From the NCBI GenBank assembly GCA_028826165.1, contig JAPDFW010000070.1:496001-560000 (forward strand): 64,000 nucleotides of DNA. Direction: 5' to 3'. A program made the translations under genes and the position numbers. Source of the stretch: Anaeramoeba ignava BMAN (Eukaryota > Protista > Anaeramoebae). The notes under the pieces were generated by a model. It had not been told where the DNA came from. It was given only the letters and a program-made list of their open reading frames with translations, and ran no database searches. The stretch's first letter is position 1, and each line of letters begins with the position of its first letter. Below are positions 9,066-18,786 of this stretch, one piece after another.

Positions 9066-11202
9066 ATGGAAACTGAAAATTTCAAAAAAGAAACAACAAA
9101 AAATTCAAATTCAAATTCAAATTTAAATTCAAAAAAGAAAATTAAAATCAAAACAATTATTAAAATTTTATCAATTATTGGATTTCTTTTAAGTTGGTTT
9201 ATATTTTCACAAATAAGAGAAACTAAAGAAGATAAAAAAGATTTTTTAATAAAAGAAGATAAAAAAGATTTTTCAAAAGAAGATAAAAAAGATTTTTCAA
9301 AAGAAGATAAAGAAAATAATGAAGAAGAATTTTTAAAACAATTAGGAGGAGCATTTTCAAGAAAACTTCAAGAAATGCCAATAAAATTATCAACTTGTAA
9401 AGAATTGATGAATATAACAACCCAAAGAAGTGGATTATATTGCTGATGCAACTTTTGCTGGATTTAATAATGTTGCTATGAATACTGGATTTGCAATGAA
9501 AGAAAGCTCAGGATCATCAGAATCATCAGGATCATCAGCGCCAAGTAGATTCAGTAAAACTAATGTGCAAGTTCAAGGAATTGATGAACCTGATATTATT
9601 AAAACTGATGGAGAAAATATTTATGCAGTTTCAAATGGAAAAGTTTATGTTTTGAAATCATTTCCAGTTTCAGATTCAAAAATCATATCCAAAATTGAAT
9701 CAGATCATTTTTTTCCGTTGAATATTTTCAACTATAAAGATTTAATTGTTGTGATTGGAATGAAAGAACAACCCAAAGAAGAAAGAAAAAAAATCAATGA
9801 AAAAATTGCTTATAATTATTATGATTATAATTGGGAAAATCATTTGCAGATCAGAATATACAACGTTTCTGATAAGGAAAATCCCAAAATTGAGCAAGTG
9901 ATCCAAATCCCGAAATCACATTATATTGATGCAAGACTTTATGATGATGAGATTGTTGTTGTTTCTAAAAAATATTTGCATTTCCGATCAACACATGAAG
10001 ATGAAGATGAAGATATTTTCCACAAAAACAACTTTCCCGAACATCAATTTTCAGAGATTGGAAAAGAAGATATTGACGAGAAAAACCCAGAAAATTTCCA
10101 ACTGCAATGCCAAGATATTGGAGCATTATCCAAAACTGACAATCGTTTCATGATCACACTGACAAAAATCAAATTGGGAAATCAAAGTATTCTCAAAAAA
10201 TCTTTTCCGCTTGAAACCTTTTCTTTCCTTGCTGGTGAAAACCAAATATTTTCTTCCTCTGAATATATGTATCTTACTTCATCCAATTCAAGATACAAAG
10301 TGGAAGATGACCAATATATTGACTACTCAATAGTTCATCAAATCGATCTCAAAAATCTCAGATACAACGGATTTTTGTCAGTTCCTGGTTATATTCACGA
10401 TCAATTCTCAATGGATGAATACCAAAACACTTTCAGAATCGCAACCACAGCGAGAACTTTCCGAACATTTCCTTATCATTCATCTTCAGCAGTTCATATA
10501 TTTGATACTAAAACACTTGAATTGCAAGGAAAGATCACAAATCTCGCTCCAAATGAGACAATATACTCTGCAAGGTTTATGAAGGAGAAACTGTTTCTTG
10601 TTACTTTCCAAAAAGTGGATCCTTTGTTTGTGATTGATCTTCACGATCCAAAAAATCCAACAGTTTTGGGCAAGTTAAAAATTCCAGGATATTCAGATTA
10701 TCTCCATCCAATCAACGAAGATGGTTCAAAACTATTAGGAATAGGAAAAGATACTTTTTCTCCTGAAAATTCGGATACTGCTTTTTATCTTGGAGTCAAG
10801 TTATCGTATTTTGATTGTTCAAATTTTACTGATCCAAAAGAAATGTTTAATATTGTGATTGGATCAAGAGGAACTGATACTCCAATATCAAGAAATGATC
10901 ATAAAGCTTTTCTTTTTGATCCTGAGAATTCTTTGGTTATTCTTCCAATTTCTCTTTATGAAACTGGTGAAAAGTATCAAAGATCTTTTCCTTCTTATAA
11001 TGATTTTGTTGGGAATTTTCTTTATGTTTTGAAAATTGATGAACCAAATGAGTTTACTATTAAAGGAAGGATTTCACATGAAAATGAACAAATTTTAAGA
11101 GCTTTATATATTGATGATTTTTTGATAAGTTTTTCAGGAACAAAGTTGAAGATTCATAGTATTGAGGATATTAAGTTTATCAAAGAAATTATTTTGGATT
11201 AA
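9066..11202 (+). CDS. Membrane-anchored prokaryote-type beta-propeller protein (Beta_propel/COG4880-like); frame break near 9420-9446
   Basis: N-terminal TM (ILSIIGFLLSWFIF). Family motifs FSKTNVQVQGIDEPDIIKTDG, DQFSMDEY..FRIATT, FLVTFQKVDPLFVIDL, LGKLKIPGYSDYLHP. Two overlapping ORFs, 9066-9446 and 9430-11202. Confidence 0.85.
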
Positions 11203-11484: not shown

Positions 11485-14400
11485 TTATTTGTCATCAGGA
11501 AGAATTTCAATCTTAAGTGGATCAACCCAAATCTTCTCATCATTTGTGTAATAAAGATAAACTCTTGAAGAAGGACCAGTATAAATTCCAGGAACAGCAG
11601 CAATAACATCAACACTAAATTTGATAATTTCTTTAGGTTTCATAGCTCTCCAGTAAAAAACAAGTTCTCTTGCTCCAATCATTTCAAAAGAAGCAATAAT
11701 TCCTTTTTTAACAAGTTCTTTTAATTGGTCGTATCTGACCTCCAAACCACCAGGTAACCCAATAATAGCAACAGTCATTGGAATACCTTCATCTGTTTTG
11801 TTGGTCACAATCACTTCGACCTCTGTTGCTTCGCCTTGTTTGATTGTGTTCATCTTTGATTCCTTGTCATTTTCATTTTGTGAAATCAATTTTGTTGAAA
11901 GATCAACTTTGCAATTTGGATTTGAATTTGGTTTTGGAGTTGTAAGTGAAAATTGAATCACAAAAGGCATTGTGGATCCTTCAATCATCTTCAATTCGAT
12001 TGAGTTTTCTTTTCCTTTCTGTAAAAATGAAGAGAAATCAGGGAAAATCAATGCACCCTTTTGTTCAGGAACAATTCCCAAAGCATCAACCGATTCATCA
12101 TTAATAATCAACTCAACTGATCCTTCTTTTGAAGCTTTTGCCGAAAGTATATCGTATTTCATGATTGCTTTTAAAGCAAGAACAGTTGATTGAGTTGAAC
12201 CGAAATTTCCACCTTTGCAATTTGAGTTGATATATTGCATTGCGTATTCAATATTTTGTCCGAATTTCTCAGGGAAATTGAGCCAAGTAAGAACGCTCAA
12301 TGATGTTGTTTCCATGTTCAGATTGAAACCTGATGAGCGTGTGATTGATGTTTCGGCTTTTGTCAAATGACCCTTTTCTTTGATATCTTTCGAATCTTTA
12401 TCTTGAAGTGCTGTCAATTTTTCTGCAAATTCAAGTGATTGATCTTTGAAACCGAAATTGAACAAAATCAACGAAACCAAAGAAAGGAAATAAGAATCAT
12501 CTTTGAACTTGTCCTGACCTTGTTTGATTAAATTATCAACAATGGGTTTGAGTTCTTTATATTCAATTTTGGATTCGGATAAAGCCCAAGTAATATAAGC
12601 ATCTGTTGTGTGAGGAGGTGCTCCACCGAAATAATCAAGAGCTCGCGAGTTTCTCTCGAAAACCCCTTTTGATTTGTCGATTCTTGTCAAAACCCAACTT
12701 GTTGTTCTGTTGAGCATTTCTTGATCAACTGGGAAAACTTGTGACAAATCAGTGAATTCCATGATCCCCATTGCAGTTAAAGCTTCATGGCCTGGATCTC
12801 CTCCAAACCATTCATAACCTCCCTTTTTGCATTCGTAACCAATCAATCGTTTGTATCCTCTCTCAAGTTTCTCGTTTGATTCGGTGATGAAATTTGGATC
12901 AACTCCGGTATGTGTTTTGAAATATTGTTGTGCCATTGTTAAAGGATACACAGTCATTGAAGTCTGTTCGAAACAACCACAAGGTTCGCGAATAAATGAT
13001 TTGAGTGATTCTGTTAGATTGCCCATTGGTGATGGGAAAACACTGCAATATGTTGTGATACTTCCTTCAACAATATCATCAGGAATTCTGATTTTTTGAT
13101 TCACTGTTCCTTCTGGTATAAGCAATCCACTCACATCAAGCGACAACGGAAATCCAACAGGTTTCACCTCAATCTCTCTTGTAACTTGATCCTTTATTGC
13201 TGGGTTGTTTGTATCATTTCCGTTGATTTGGAGTTTTGCTGTTTCAAGTGTTTGACTAACTGTCATGTTGAAAAATTTCTTTGTTCTTTCTTCTGATTTC
13301 AGTGTTCCTTTCCATTCTGAATCTCCTTCGATTGCTAATGATTTGCTGAGTATCTCCGCTTTCAATGAGAGATCCATATCGTTTGGTAAAGAATTAACAA
13401 GAGCTACTGGGAGATTAATTTTATCTCCAAATGAAACTTCAAGTGGGAATTTTGGTTCTAAATAAAACGGTTCTTTTGAATCAATAACAAAACTCTCAGA
13501 AAATCCAAGTAAACCTTCTGAATTGAATCCATCAATAAAAACTCTGAATGAAGAAACAGAATCATTCAAATCAAATTGGATTGTTGTTTCAAAAATATCT
13601 TTTTCTTCAGTTATAGAATTAAAAGGTGAATAATAAAGAGTGTCAACAAAATCATTTCTTTCTCCAGGTTGTCTATTAGGTCTTCTTTGATGAGCAAATT
13701 CTCTTGCATATTGAACTTGAGGAGCTTGAATTGGAGCTCTAAATCAAAATCAAAAGCAATATCTCTTTTCCATTCTTTTTCTTGCCATTTTCTTTTTTGC
13801 CAATTGCTTTTTTGGTTTTGCCATTTCTTTTTTTTCTTTCATTACCATTTTCATTTCCATTGGCATTTGTTCTTTTTCTTCTTCCATTGGAATATCCATT
13901 GGCATATCCATTTCTTTTCCTTTTTCTTTTTCAACATCCATTGGAACTTCAACTGGCATTTCTTTTTCTTTTTCTTTTTCTTTTTTGTTTCTTCTTGAAT
14001 TTCTAGTTTTGGAATAATAGCCTCGTTTTGAATTGCTTTTTCTCTCATCATCATATTTCTTCGTCGTGGCATTTCTTTTGACTTCTTCTTCATTTTCATT
14101 CTGCTCATTCTTTCTCTTCTTCTTTCATTTTCTAATTCTCTTTCTCGAATTTTTGGATCACAATAAGCAACAAATAATTTTTCCAATTTTTGTTTATTTG
14201 GATTATTGACTAAATTCGTATCAATTTTAACAAATCTTCTCCAACCTTGAGTTCCCAATAAAAGATCCAATTCAGTGAATTTTTCCAATTTTTCTTGTTC
14301 TTCATTTTCATTTGATTCAACTTGATCTGGTGAAAGATAGACTTGACAATCTTCAAGATGATCGACTTCGTTTTCAAGGAAATACATTGCTGGCAATCTT

Positions 14401-16069
14401 GGAGGTCTTTCTCTTTTCTCAGTCATTTTAAACACACTATCATCAGTGACAGTAACTCCACAAACAGCTTCTATTGGTTTTCCTGATTTGGTTTTTGATT
14501 TGATTTTCAATGATACTGTGTCTCCTGGACAATATGTTTTTTTATCAGGTTCAACTTCGAATATGATTTCATCAACTGGATGAACAAATACTATTCTTTC
14601 AGCTATTGGTGTTAAATCTGTTTTCTTCCAAACTGTGATTCTAAGGATTCCATCGTTTTCTTTTGTTTCAAGTTCTATTTTTTGACTTGAGTTTTCTTCT
14701 TCAAATTTGATTTCTTTGTTTGATATTTCTTTTTCTCTTTTATAAACTCCAACTATATATTCTTCTTTTTGTGTTGATGAAATTGTGATTGAGATTTTTT
14801 CTTTGAATTCGAATGATTTTTTGTTTGATATTATTGAGACACCTTTTGATTTGATTTCTGGGAGTTTGATAGGAACAGTAACACCAGCTGGTTTTATTAT
14901 TTTGATTTCGTAACCAATTTCTTTTTGGGGAGTGAATTCGAATCTTCCTCTTCCTTCGTGGTTAGTTTTAACTAATTTTTTTAAATTAAATTGAATATTT
15001 TGAATTATTTTAAATTGAATTTTAATTTGAATATTTTGAATTAAATATTTTAAATTGAATATTTATTTTAAATTTTAATTAAATATTTTGAATTAAATAT
15101 TTTTATTTTAAATTTTAATTAAATATTTTGAATTAAATTGAATATACTTATAACATTTTTATTAACTCCATCCTCTTTCGAACAAACTAATATTCCTTCA
15201 AAATCAGCAGGACTTCCAGAAGGTGTAACAGCTTCAACATAAACACCACATTTCAAACCACAAACTAACTCACCACCTTCAGGATATAATTGAACATCCA
15301 TTTTCTTAAGAACAACAGGAAGAGTTTTCGAGGCATTTTCATTAACACCACCATCAGTAATTGAACAATTAAGATTACCAATACCTTCTTTAATTTCCAG
15401 AGGCAATTTAAAAGAAATAATACACTTTCCATTTTTATCAAGAACATAATCGCCTCTATAAACTTCTTCATTATCCAATCTAGCAATAGCGGTTACATTG
15501 GCACCTTCAGGAAAACCGCCTTCAGCTCTTTCAACGGATAAACTAGCCTTGACTTCATCACCAGCACCATAAGCTTTTTGGATAAATTCGAGATCTGACT
15601 TCAATCTTGGGGGTCTAAAAACACGAACAGTAAATTTTCTTTCTGATAAAGGGGTACCTTTTCCATATTCATGAAAAATTTGCATTTTATATTCTCCCCC
15701 AACTGAATCTTCTGGTATTTTCCATGAAACTGAATAAACACTTTTTTGCGGTCTTGAAATTACTTGTTCTAATATTGAATCCCCCTTTGGACTCAATATC
15801 TTCATTTTTGGATTCCCTTCTAACTCATTTAAATCTCCAAGTGGTTTGTGATTAAATGCTTCTAATATTACCCCCCGAAAATATACTGTTTCTCCTGGTT
15901 TGTAAGTTACTTTGTCTGTTGAAATGTGTAATGAATATCGCGCACTTTGAAAGTAATCTTGTTCTAATCGATCTTTTTCTGTTATTTTTTTTGGTTGAAG
16001 TGGTTTTTTAGGTTTTGTTTGTTCTTTTTCATCTTTTTCTGCTTCTTGTTTTGTTGGTTTTTGACCCAT
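11485..16069 (-). CDS. Alpha-2-macroglobulin family thioester protein, bacterial-like architecture
   Basis: MG-domain motif STDKVTYKPGETVYFRG; VQLYPEGGELV; LDLLLGTQGWRRF; thioester motif EPCGCFEQTS; GGNFGSTQSTVLALKA; receptor-binding-like C-terminus SRVYLYY. Intron 14972-15147. Frame disruptions at ~13980 and 13744-13752. Confidence 0.9.
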
Positions 16070-16199: not shown

Positions 16200-18180
16200 T
16201 TAATAATTAAATTAAATTCCACTTTTTTTAATTAACTAAATATAAATAATTTTAACTATTTTTATTATTAAATCAATTCTATTCTTTTTTAATTTATTAA
16301 ATATAAATAAATTATTAAATTAATTCCACTTTTTTTTAATTTATTAATTATATTTTAATTATTTAATCAATTCCACTTTTTAAATTTATTAATTATATTT
16401 TAATTATTTAATCAATTCTATTTTATTTTAATTTATTAATTATATTTTTATTATTTAATTAATTCCACTTTTTTTTAATTTATTAATTATATTTTAATTA
16501 TTAAATCAATTCCACTTTTTTTTAATTTATTAATTATATTTTAATTATTTAATTAATTCCACTTTTTTTTAATTTATTAATTATATTTTAATTATTAAAT
16601 CAATTCCACTTTTTAAATTTAATATTTTAATTATTTAATCAATTCCACTTTTTTTAATTATTCCACTTTTATTTTATTTTATTAATTATTTTTAATTATT
16701 TAATCAATTCCACTTTTTTTAATTTATTAATTATATTTTAATTATTAAATCAATTCTATTCTTTTTAATTTATTAATTATATTTTAATTATTAAATCAAT
16801 TCCACTTTTATTTTATTAATTATATTTTTATTATTAAATCAATTTCATTTTAATTAATTAATTATATTTTTATTATTAAATCAATTCTATTCTTTTTTAA
16901 TTTAATTATATTTTAATTATTTAATCAATTCCATTTTATTTTTAATTTATTAATTATATTTTTAATTATTAAATCAATTCTACTTTTTTTAATTTATTAA
17001 TTATATTTTAATTATTTAATCAATTCTACTTTTTAAATTTATTAATTATATTTTAATTATTTAATCAATTCTACTTTTTTTAATTTATTAATTATATTTT
17101 AATTATTTAATCAATTTCACTTTTTATTTTAATTTTATATTTTAATTATTATTTCAATTACTTTTTAATTAATTAATTACTTTTTAATTATTAAATCAAT
17201 TACTTTTTATTTTTAATTATTTTATTATTAAATATTCTATTTTTAAATTAATTAATTAATTATATTTTAATTATTTAATTAATTCCACTTTTTAATTTAT
17301 TAATTATATTTTAATTATTAAATCAATTCCACTTTTTAATTTATTAATTATATTTTAATTATTTAATCAATTCCACTTTTTTAATTTATTAATTATATTT
17401 TAATTATTTAATCAATTCTACTTTTTAAATTTAATTATATTTTAATTTATTAATTATATTTTTATTATTAAATCTATTCCACTTTTTAATTTATTAAATT
17501 ATTTTAATCAATTCCACTTTTTAATTTATTAATTATATTTTAATTATTAAATCAATTCTACTTTTTAATTTATTAATTATATTTTAATTATTAAATCAAT
17601 TCCACTTTTTAATTTATTAATTATATTTTAATTATTTAATTAATTCCACTTTTTAATTTATTAATTAAATTTTAATTATTAAATCAATTCCACTTTTTTT
17701 AATTTATTAATTATATTTTAATTATTTAATCAATTCCAATTTATTTTTAATTTATTAATTATATTTTAATTATTTAAATCAATTCCACTTTTTTAAATTT
17801 ATTAATTATATTTTAATTATTTAATTAATTCTACTTTTTAATTTATTAATTATATTTTAATTATTTAATCAATTCCACTTTTTTTAATTTATTAATTAAA
17901 TTTTTATTATTAAATCAATTCTATTCTTTTTAATTTATTAATTATATTTTAATTATTAAATCAATTCCACTTTTTTTTTAATTAATTAATTATATTTTAA
18001 TTATTTAATCAATTCCATTTTATTTTATTAATTATATTTTTATTAATTAATTAATTAAATTTTAATTATTTAATCAATTCCACTTTTTAAGTTTAATTAT
18101 ATTTTTATTATTAAATCAATTCCACTTTTTAAATTTAATTATATTTTTATTATTTAAATCAATTCTATTCTTTTTTAATT
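16200..18180. repeat. Intergenic ~46-47-bp tandem satellite (~40 copies) with core AATCAATTCCACTTTT
   Basis: The TTCCAC marker recurs at about 16324, 16371, 16462, 16510, 16557, 16604 and onward. Confidence 0.92.
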
Positions 18181-18786
18181 TAATATTTTAAAAATAAAAT
18201 TCTTTTTTCTTTTTTTTTTTCCATTTTTTTAATCTTAATCCTTTTTTCTTTTTTTCTCTCATTCTTTTCTCAACCTCTCCCATTAATTAATTATCTATTT
18301 ACTTTTCTCAAAAAAAATCATTTATTAATTTATATAATCCCTTTTGATTTTTTTATTGAAAAATTCGTTTTTTTAAAAATTTCGATCCAAAAAAACAAAT
18401 TTAAAAGCGAAATTTAAGTTGAGAAAAATTTCAAAGAAGAGATCACTTCTTTTAATCTGATCAAAAATAACCCTAAAATATAACTTATTCAATTTCCACT
18501 TTATTTGACTAAAGATCAAAAAGGAGAATTTTTTTTCCACTTTCAACAATAAGAAAAGGGGAAATTTTAACTTGAAAAATAAACTCAGAAAATGAAAATA
18601 AAATTTAATAATAACATAACTCACTTTTGTTAATAATTCTTTTAATTTAATTTCATTGATCTATCCTCTCTTTCTTTTACTTTTAAAAATAAAAGCAAAA
18701 AAATTTAAAAAAAGAAAAAGTTTTTTTATTTTTAATTTTTTTTTTTTTAATTAAAAAAATTTTTTTTTTTTATTAACGCAGAGTGT

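Follow-up and report, generated by a model that had tools for sequence, protein, structure and literature searches.

A signal-less family of macroglobulin/complement-type thioester genes with a candidate N-myristoylation motif in Anaeramoeba ignava

Textbook thioester proteins, among them complement C3 and C4, alpha-2-macroglobulin, the insect TEPs and bacterial A2M, serve in extracellular or periplasmic defence. We consider here a gene of this type from the protist Anaeramoeba ignava BMAN, located from start to stop codon at 11485..16069 on the minus strand of a 64,000-nucleotide stretch of contig JAPDFW010000070.1 (assembly GCA_028826165.1, positions 496,001 to 560,000). We refer to this whole stretch as the window and count all positions from its first letter; every feature of the gene given below lies on the same strand. 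On the best explanation, the gene belongs to an expansion of alpha-2-macroglobulin/complement-type thioester proteins that is specific to Anaeramoeba, is expressed and is maintained by selection. Its product, which has no signal peptide, begins with an N-myristoylation consensus. The gene itself is already known, being publicly annotated, and the genome paper includes its family in a supplementary table; what is new is a dedicated, expanded, signal-less thioester gene family with a lipid-anchor motif. We found no literature pairing Anaeramoeba with macroglobulin beyond that supplementary-table listing, and no description of a missing signal peptide, a myristoylation motif or an intracellular role for the family. 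A 2026 review of A2M makes no mention of protist or cytosolic forms.

The gene product has its closest relatives in bacteria, in proteins of about 1400 amino acids annotated as MG2 domain-containing or A-macroglobulin complement component proteins, which are collinear with the amoeba protein over its full length at 38-46% identity (40-46% over 740 residues for the best matches outside Anaeramoeba, and 38-44% in the collinear N-terminal half). Both groups have (R)Y-x-x-H-x-S-T-D-K-x-x-Y-x-P-G-E at the start of MG1, LDLLLGTQGWRRF before the bait region and P-x-G-C-F-E-Q-T-S at the thioester. The bacterial proteins, however, open with a Sec-type hydrophobic signal peptide followed by L-G-G-x-x-R-Y, whereas the amoeba proteins open with M-G-x-x-x-S/T and a hydrophilic tail, are encoded by AT-rich genes with a spliceosomal intron, and form a clan of their own.

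More distant are the metazoan protease traps alpha-2-macroglobulin, CD109 and A2ML1, which may be monomeric or oligomeric. The predicted amoeba fold superposes on their native forms and follows the same logic of bait and then thioester, but identity is only about 17%, and the metazoan proteins, which are glycosylated, rich in disulfides and either secreted or GPI-anchored, have GCGEQ in place of GCFEQ. E. coli ECAM/YfhM and Salmonella A2M are monomeric thioester traps, tethered by an N-terminal lipid anchor to the membrane face that they protect, a likeness that extends to the arrangement predicted here, although theirs is a lipobox diacylglycerol anchor in the periplasm and ours would be a myristoyl anchor in the cytosol. 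The bacterial genes are also linked to PBP1C, while the neighbours in the window are HECT, RhoGAP, SHQ1 and Beta_propel genes. A first-pass annotation of the window, made by a model from the letters alone, had described characterized A2M, TEP and complement proteins as secreted or periplasmic. This is not quite true of all of them, an exception being a cytosolic C3 of human cells that is made from an alternative start without a signal peptide and is active against invasive bacteria (PMC9095555). That C3 belongs to the same superfamily of thioester proteins and meets invading bacteria in the cytosol where it is made, but in mammals it represents a minor isoform of an otherwise secreted protein, whereas in Anaeramoeba we find a whole signal-less family, a lipid-anchor motif and members with ubiquitin baits.

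A word-index protein search identified the window gene as the one annotated "macroglobulin / complement [Anaeramoeba ignava]" (KAJ5074214.1, 1403 aa; P0001). The 90% cluster of P0001 includes a EukProt transcriptome open reading frame (ORF), EP01156 (P0121), of 1469 aa, called complete, which begins at the same methionine, MGQKPTK, as the window gene and constitutes the transcript evidence for it. The existence of P0121 thus indicates that the gene is expressed. The exons in the window were searched one by one, and full-length analyses were carried out on the database proteins P0001 and P0121. Exon 1 (15148..16069) encodes a hydrophilic N-terminal tail of about 44 residues and then the first MG domains, and is identical to the transcript at 307 of 307 residues. 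It is followed by a GT..AG spliceosomal intron of 176 nt in phase 1 (14972..15147), whose position is common to the MG-type A. ignava paralogues, and by exon 2 (11485..14971), which encodes the remaining MG domains, the bait region, the A2M domain, CUB/TED, MG8/RBD and the stop codon at 11487-11485. P0121 is 100% identical across the exon junction, confirming the single intron that the first-pass annotation had proposed, and supplies the transcript whose absence would have told against it.

The N-terminus reads MGQKPTKQEAEKDEKE. Its first 44 residues are hydrophilic, with a maximum Kyte-Doolittle value of -0.12 for any 10-residue window before MG1, against a median maximum N-terminal hydropathy of 2.72 in 85 complete bacterial homologues. 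No 19-residue window in the protein exceeds 1.22, and thus we see no signal peptide, signal anchor, transmembrane (TM) segment or GPI-type tail; nor is there a lipobox at the N-terminus. Such signals can be recognized in this genome, as shown by a neighbouring gene with an ordinary hydrophobic signal anchor.

We considered the possibility that the apparent start is internal and that an upstream exon supplies a signal peptide. The gene does have an intron, and its 5' end is known from a transcriptome ORF and not from read mapping. However, the start methionine lies two codons past an in-frame TAA, with no AG between TAA and ATG to serve as acceptor, the transcript ORF was called complete with the same start, and all paralogues, as well as the A. 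flamelloides genes, show the same arrangement. In addition, about 40 copies of a 44-bp AT-rich satellite (16257-18184, some 1.9 kb) lie directly upstream of the promoter region, with a T-rich and then an A-rich promoter-like stretch between satellite and gene. With an identical transcript start, an in-frame stop immediately before it and some 1.9 kb of satellite farther upstream, the absence of a signal peptide cannot be put down to the gene model; a hidden signal-peptide exon is nearly excluded and we regard it as highly improbable. The same upstream region has a T-rich element containing TTTTCATTTTTT, followed by an A-run, no more than about 60 nt from the ATG. It recurs before paralogues L009, L011, L016 and L018 and may be a core promoter motif of A. 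ignava.

The first seven codons (16049..16069), M-G-Q-K-P-T-K, fit PROSITE pattern PS00008 at the N-terminus, with Gly2, Thr6 and a favourable Lys7, and the genome has two N-myristoyltransferase loci (PF01233, E values 9e-69 and 1e-65). The account of the N-terminus in the first-pass annotation, which had reported neither signal peptide nor lipobox and had recognized the MGxxxS/T pattern, therefore stands, and is strengthened by the comparison with paralogues. There are 12 TED loci in the 42.8-Mb A. ignava genome, including one tandem pair, and none of the 12 has a signal peptide. M-G-x-x-x-S/T is present in nine of 10 MG-type N-termini: the window gene, L016 (M-G-Q-K-P-T-K), L018 (M-G-Q-K-N-T-K), L010 (M-G-S-N-Q-T-K), the tandem pair L013 and L014 (both M-G-N-N-E-S-K), and three A. 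flamelloides proteins (M-G-N-E-H-S, M-G-N-I-E-S and M-G-N-E-Q-S). The tenth, L015, begins M-G-N-R-N-E-K. From the motif to the first MG domain the tail is 14 to 66 residues long, with no further conservation; as the tail has varied while M-G-x-x-x-S/T has been kept, selection appears to act on the motif itself. L013 and L014, on contig C43, are nearly identical head-to-tail copies with branch lengths below 0.01, which indicates a very recent tandem duplication.

Four further paralogues (L009, L011, L012 and L019, on contigs C70, C59, C24 and C74) begin M-L-S-I-E-Q or M-I-S-I-E-N, likewise without a hydrophobic signal, and their bait slot holds at least six tandem ubiquitin-family domains (PF00240, E values down to 3e-74). 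These domains share one uninterrupted ORF with the A2M, TED and RBD parts, the last repeat is near-canonical and ends in Gly-Gly, and NCBI annotates the genes as 1911-1966-aa proteins. In a search of 5.8 billion proteins the ubiquitin/macroglobulin fusion was found only in A. ignava. The four belong to the same family and clan as the window gene, lack a signal peptide as it does, and have the same thioester motif in three of four cases (L019 is without CxEQ, although its ORF is still open); they differ in the start without Gly2 and in the ubiquitin bait, where the window gene has a charged, low-complexity one. The M-L-S...R-F start of L009, L011 and L012 superficially resembles trichomonad hydrogenosomal presequences, but this is probably coincidence, since R-F belongs to the conserved start of MG1.

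Ubiquitin domains are a cytosolic feature and thus support a cytosolic life for the family. This bears on the possibility that the proteins leave the cell by unconventional export, through shed vesicles or contractile or secretory lysosomes, and then act as classical protease inhibitors in the medium or the symbiosome lumen. Myristoylated proteins can enter shed vesicles, and the case for export also draws on the bacterial homologues, which are secreted, on the characterized relatives, all of which are seen as acting outside the cytosol, and on the connection of the symbiosome to the exterior (PMC11550330). Yet none of the 12 loci encodes a signal peptide, TM segment or GPI-like tail, the ubiquitin-domain baits of the sister paralogues make sense only in the cytosol, and the neighbour gene shows normal hydrophobic signals in use. 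We therefore consider export unlikely. That the window protein is translated in the cytosol and stays there seems to us likely, and its myristoylation on Gly2, as predicted from the motif, is also favoured, though with somewhat less assurance.

The domain content is that of a complete macroglobulin. Pfam matches were obtained for MG2 (15626..15931, E 9e-18), for A2M (13363..13593, E 1e-9) and, weakly, in the exon-by-exon search, for A2M_BRD (E 7e-4). A thioester domain, TED_complement, is supported by Pfam (E 6e-23) and by fold at 12154..13026, and a C-terminal MG8 or receptor-binding-like domain by weak A2M_recep and bMG10 matches and by fold at 11533..11877. An NCBIfam scan assigned no family to the window gene. 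In AlphaFold2 models, the N-terminal half forms consecutive beta-sandwiches from residue 45 to about residue 470, after a disordered tail (residues 1-26 are disordered), and the C-terminal half (pLDDT 84.8) shows the MG7-CUB-TED-MG8 arrangement of the latent conformation. By Foldseek the latter matches native C3, A2ML1, A2M, C5, CD109 and TEP1 with TMq of 0.64-0.69, but activated forms with only 0.30-0.37. The thioester motif G-C-F-E-Q lies at 12964..12978, within P-x-G-C-F-E-Q-T-S, which is invariant in an alignment of 49 sequences, and GCFEQ is kept in 11 of the 12 A. ignava loci. The intact CxEQ motif and the full MG/TED/receptor-binding-like layout, both noted from the sequence before any of these searches, are thus borne out by domain matches and fold.

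When the protein is aligned by HMMER to CD109, A2M and C3, an aspartate, within R-A-L-D-Y-F-G-G, falls at the position of the C3 catalytic His1104; the equivalent residue is Asn in A2M and Asp in C4A. In C4A, Asp leads to direct reaction with amines, while His gives C3 and C4B their reactivity toward hydroxyls. By this rule reactivity toward amines, that is, protein lysines, is predicted for the window protein, and we hold loosely to the view that its thioester chemistry is amine-directed. A lipid-anchored protein in the cytosol might instead be a tagger, its activated thioester marking escaped bacteria or the contents of damaged vacuoles for autophagy or disposal in the manner of cytosolic C3. 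In favour of tagging, an expanded family with a variable region would suit a role in recognition, native C3 is among the fold-search matches along with A2M, and cytosolic C3 opsonises invasive S. aureus (PMC9095555). It fits poorly with an Asp, which favours protein amines, at the position that in C3 and C4B confers hydroxyl reactivity, with the lack of any anaphylatoxin-like or convertase-binding elements that we could see, and with the fact that the nearest solved relatives by sequence are A2M, CD109 and A2ML1 and not C3. We consider such a role unlikely, to about the same degree as export.

Between the anchors LDLLLGTQGWRRF and YAREFAH lies the bait-region slot (13711..14231), a charged, Met/Lys/Glu-rich, low-complexity segment of about 175 residues, compared with 97-197 in bacterial homologues. 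It falls between the A2M_BRD and A2M domains and has low pLDDT. Compared with L016, the closest paralogue, the DNA of the slot has an identity of 0.51, against 0.50 for shuffled controls, while the 300-nt flanks are 86% identical; the slot is thus a discrete cassette, hypervariable between paralogues. The folded parts show dN/dS of 0.25 and 0.29 against L016 and 0.12 against L018, a range of 0.12-0.29 that indicates purifying selection.

The assembled sequence and the transcript disagree in this same region. P0121 is identical to the genome in exon 1, at residues 309-598 and at residues 721-1469; all differences (three small indels and five substitutions) are within residues 599-720, which are A-rich and of low complexity. 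The mismatch stretch (13735..14010) contains two in-frame TGA codons and is treated as an intron in the NCBI model. The indels cluster near 14010-13960 and 13775-13735, where the reading frame of the assembly shifts and is broken inside exon 2, and two of the substitutions are just 5' of 13735-14010. The transcript reads through the bait region without a frame break, while P0001 spans the breaks by a second intron with a poor donor, which is probably an artefact. We read the frame breaks as an assembly error or an allelic difference. The gene layout given in the first-pass annotation is correct in other respects, but it overlooked this discontinuity.

Frame breaks in the assembled copy might also be expected if the protein were a scaffold or a relic, with a non-covalent role in binding or structure or with a thioester that does not form, and with a variable linker and MG motif that have no meaning for defence. 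Among A2M relatives, C5 and YfaS are examples without a thioester, and L019 is a member of the present family that lacks CxEQ and yet remains open. On the other hand, dN/dS is well below 1 and the thioester signature has been preserved with the constancy described above, both among the 49 aligned sequences (P-x-G-C-F-E-Q-T-S invariant) and at all but one of the 12 loci. A scaffold or relic therefore seems improbable, slightly more so than tagging or export.

Overall, the best explanation is that the window gene encodes a cytosolic, N-myristoylated, membrane-held covalent protease trap of macroglobulin type, a reading to which we give an even chance. In Anaeramoeba, the hydrophobic signal peptide of the bacterial family appears to have been replaced by a short, hydrophilic, disordered tail starting with a conserved N-myristoylation motif, and this replacement makes cytosolic translation, myristoylation on Gly2 and retention at a membrane most likely. 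Its attachment would be weak or reversible, at the cytosolic leaflet of cellular membranes. If it works like other monomeric macroglobulins, a protease would cleave the exposed, hypervariable bait segment, the molecule would spring open, and the Cys-Gln thioester of GCFEQ would react with a lysine of an adjacent molecule, so that the cleaving protease would be covalently captured at the membrane. Likely targets would be proteases reaching the cytosol out of leaking phagolysosomes, viruses or bacteria, whether the last are ingested, invading or symbiotic. Candidates include effectors or leaked hydrolases at phagosomes, at the cytosolic face of the symbiosome, or from intracellular bacteria, of which the Legionellales symbiont reported from A. 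pumila is an example. Lipidation, the membrane face, formation of the thioester, protease trapping, the target and any part in defence or symbiosis are all inferred, and trapping by bait cleavage and thioester capture is in our view about as probable as its opposite.

Several observations weigh against this explanation. Myristate alone binds membranes weakly, and the tail is of mixed charge, not cleanly polybasic, with no nearby cysteine for palmitate. The motif is not universal in the family, as L015 has Glu at position 6 and the four paralogues that start M-L-S or M-I-S have no Gly2. Amoebae possess unconventional secretion routes. A cysteine test of compartment was uninformative: bacterial homologues conserve just four cysteines, the thioester Cys included, most of which the amoebae retain, and the conserved cysteines carried no compartment signal. 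The assignment of the aspartate at the His1104 position rests on a HMMER alignment with a gap adjoining the site. A disordered, hypervariable linker can arise from relaxed constraint and need not reflect an arms race, and the assembled copy, frame-broken in the bait, could be a damaged allele, with the transcript derived from another allele.

The distribution of relatives bears on the origin of the family. A pattern scan of GTDB representatives found the bacterial family in at least 593 species, its hosts including Planctomycetota, Myxococcota, Melainabacteria, Lentisphaerota, Kiritimatiellota and Acidobacteriota. Nearly all complete bacterial homologues carry hydrophobic signal peptides, and the few exceptions look like truncated start calls. 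Five divergent bacterial members (L085, L090, L093, L096 and L097, from Planctomycetota and one Alcaligenaceae metagenome-assembled genome) are longer, at 1750-1980 aa, and start not with a plain signal peptide but with a cytoplasmic-looking segment that is anti-sigma-factor-like in appearance. The only other eukaryote among the matches is the amoebozoan Protostelium nocturnum, with four transcriptome-derived proteins (P0003, P0007, P0023 and P0037). These also have no signal peptide and share an amphipathic-looking M-K-(I/L)-F-(D/E)-x-(I/L) followed by a charged tail, which could be a parallel way to re-address the protein. In the genome paper's supplementary table, PANTHER PTHR11412 has 10, 10 and 9 genes in the three Anaeramoeba genomes and is absent from the other species compared, including other metamonads, Naegleria and Dictyostelium.

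We constructed two quick maximum-likelihood trees with IQ-TREE from the C-terminal 700 columns, the second with the divergent GTDB members added. In both of these unrooted trees, Anaeramoeba, Protostelium and the bacteria form three separate clans, each with SH-aLRT support of 99-100, and the eukaryotes branch outside the bacteria sampled. With neither an outgroup nor nesting, the trees thus do not show the direction of any transfer, and the tree tool flagged a compositional bias that may pull the AT-rich eukaryotes together. Acquisition from bacteria is nonetheless the simpler reading, and we think it rather probable, because the family is found in hundreds of bacterial species of many phyla as against two protist genera, because the genome-paper table lists it for all three Anaeramoeba genomes and for none of the other metamonads, Naegleria or Dictyostelium, and because the superfamily ancestrally has a signal peptide. 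Given the intron and the host-like composition, any transfer must be old, earlier than the divergence of A. ignava from A. flamelloides. The lateral acquisition proposed in the first-pass annotation is therefore favoured by the distribution but not by the trees. Its expectation that the protein would not group with ordinary secreted eukaryotic TEPs agrees with the database matches, in which the closest relatives are secreted bacterial proteins and not metazoan TEPs.

The nearest solved structures by sequence are human A2M (E 1e-20), CD109 and A2ML1 (range 1e-20 to 4e-15), and the E. coli and Salmonella A2M chains were not among the PDB matches at E <= 0.001. Metazoan A2M/CD109 thus stand nearer to the family than does bacterial A2M of the E. 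coli type, and we rejected membership in the ECAM/YfhM group, given the lack of a sequence match at that threshold and of a lipobox. The Desulfobacter-type symbionts of Anaeramoeba have an alpha-2-macroglobulin of their own, next to PBP1C and of the E. coli (ECAM) type (PMC11550330, supplementary file 13). A symbiont is accordingly an unlikely donor of the gene, as its PBP1C-linked A2M represents a different branch from the host family.

The window as a whole is extremely AT-rich (8-40% GC), and its genes, such as those for HECT, RhoGAP and SHQ1 proteins, are ordinary eukaryotic ones. The convergent neighbour at 9066-11202 on the plus strand encodes a Beta_propel protein (PF09826, E 9e-123), of a family mostly known from prokaryotes. 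The ORF upstream of it encodes a hydrophobic signal anchor, and as the two ORFs overlap in different frames, they must be joined by an intron or a frameshift.

The paralogues also allow a broader, and more doubtful, proposal, that the family provides cytosolic, cell-autonomous, complement-like surveillance, a multigene set of thioester "mousetraps" that would jointly and covalently capture enzymes delivered into the host cell by bacteria or viruses. Some members, such as the product of the window gene, would be lipid-anchored on the cytosolic face of the phagosome, symbiosome or plasma membrane and would carry fast-changing baits, while others would be baited with ubiquitin for deubiquitinases. 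Although this is possible, we think it less likely than not by a fair distance.

If the protein does act as a membrane-held trap, covalent-capture chemistry would have been moved into the cytosol of a free-living protist with bacterial symbionts. The family would then be an independent, genetically hard-wired counterpart to the debated mammalian "intracellular complement" and an example of how a secreted protein may be re-addressed by swapping a few N-terminal residues. It could also serve as a natural template for intracellular protease-capture tools. For Anaeramoeba itself, it would be a candidate host factor controlling symbionts, prey or pathogens.

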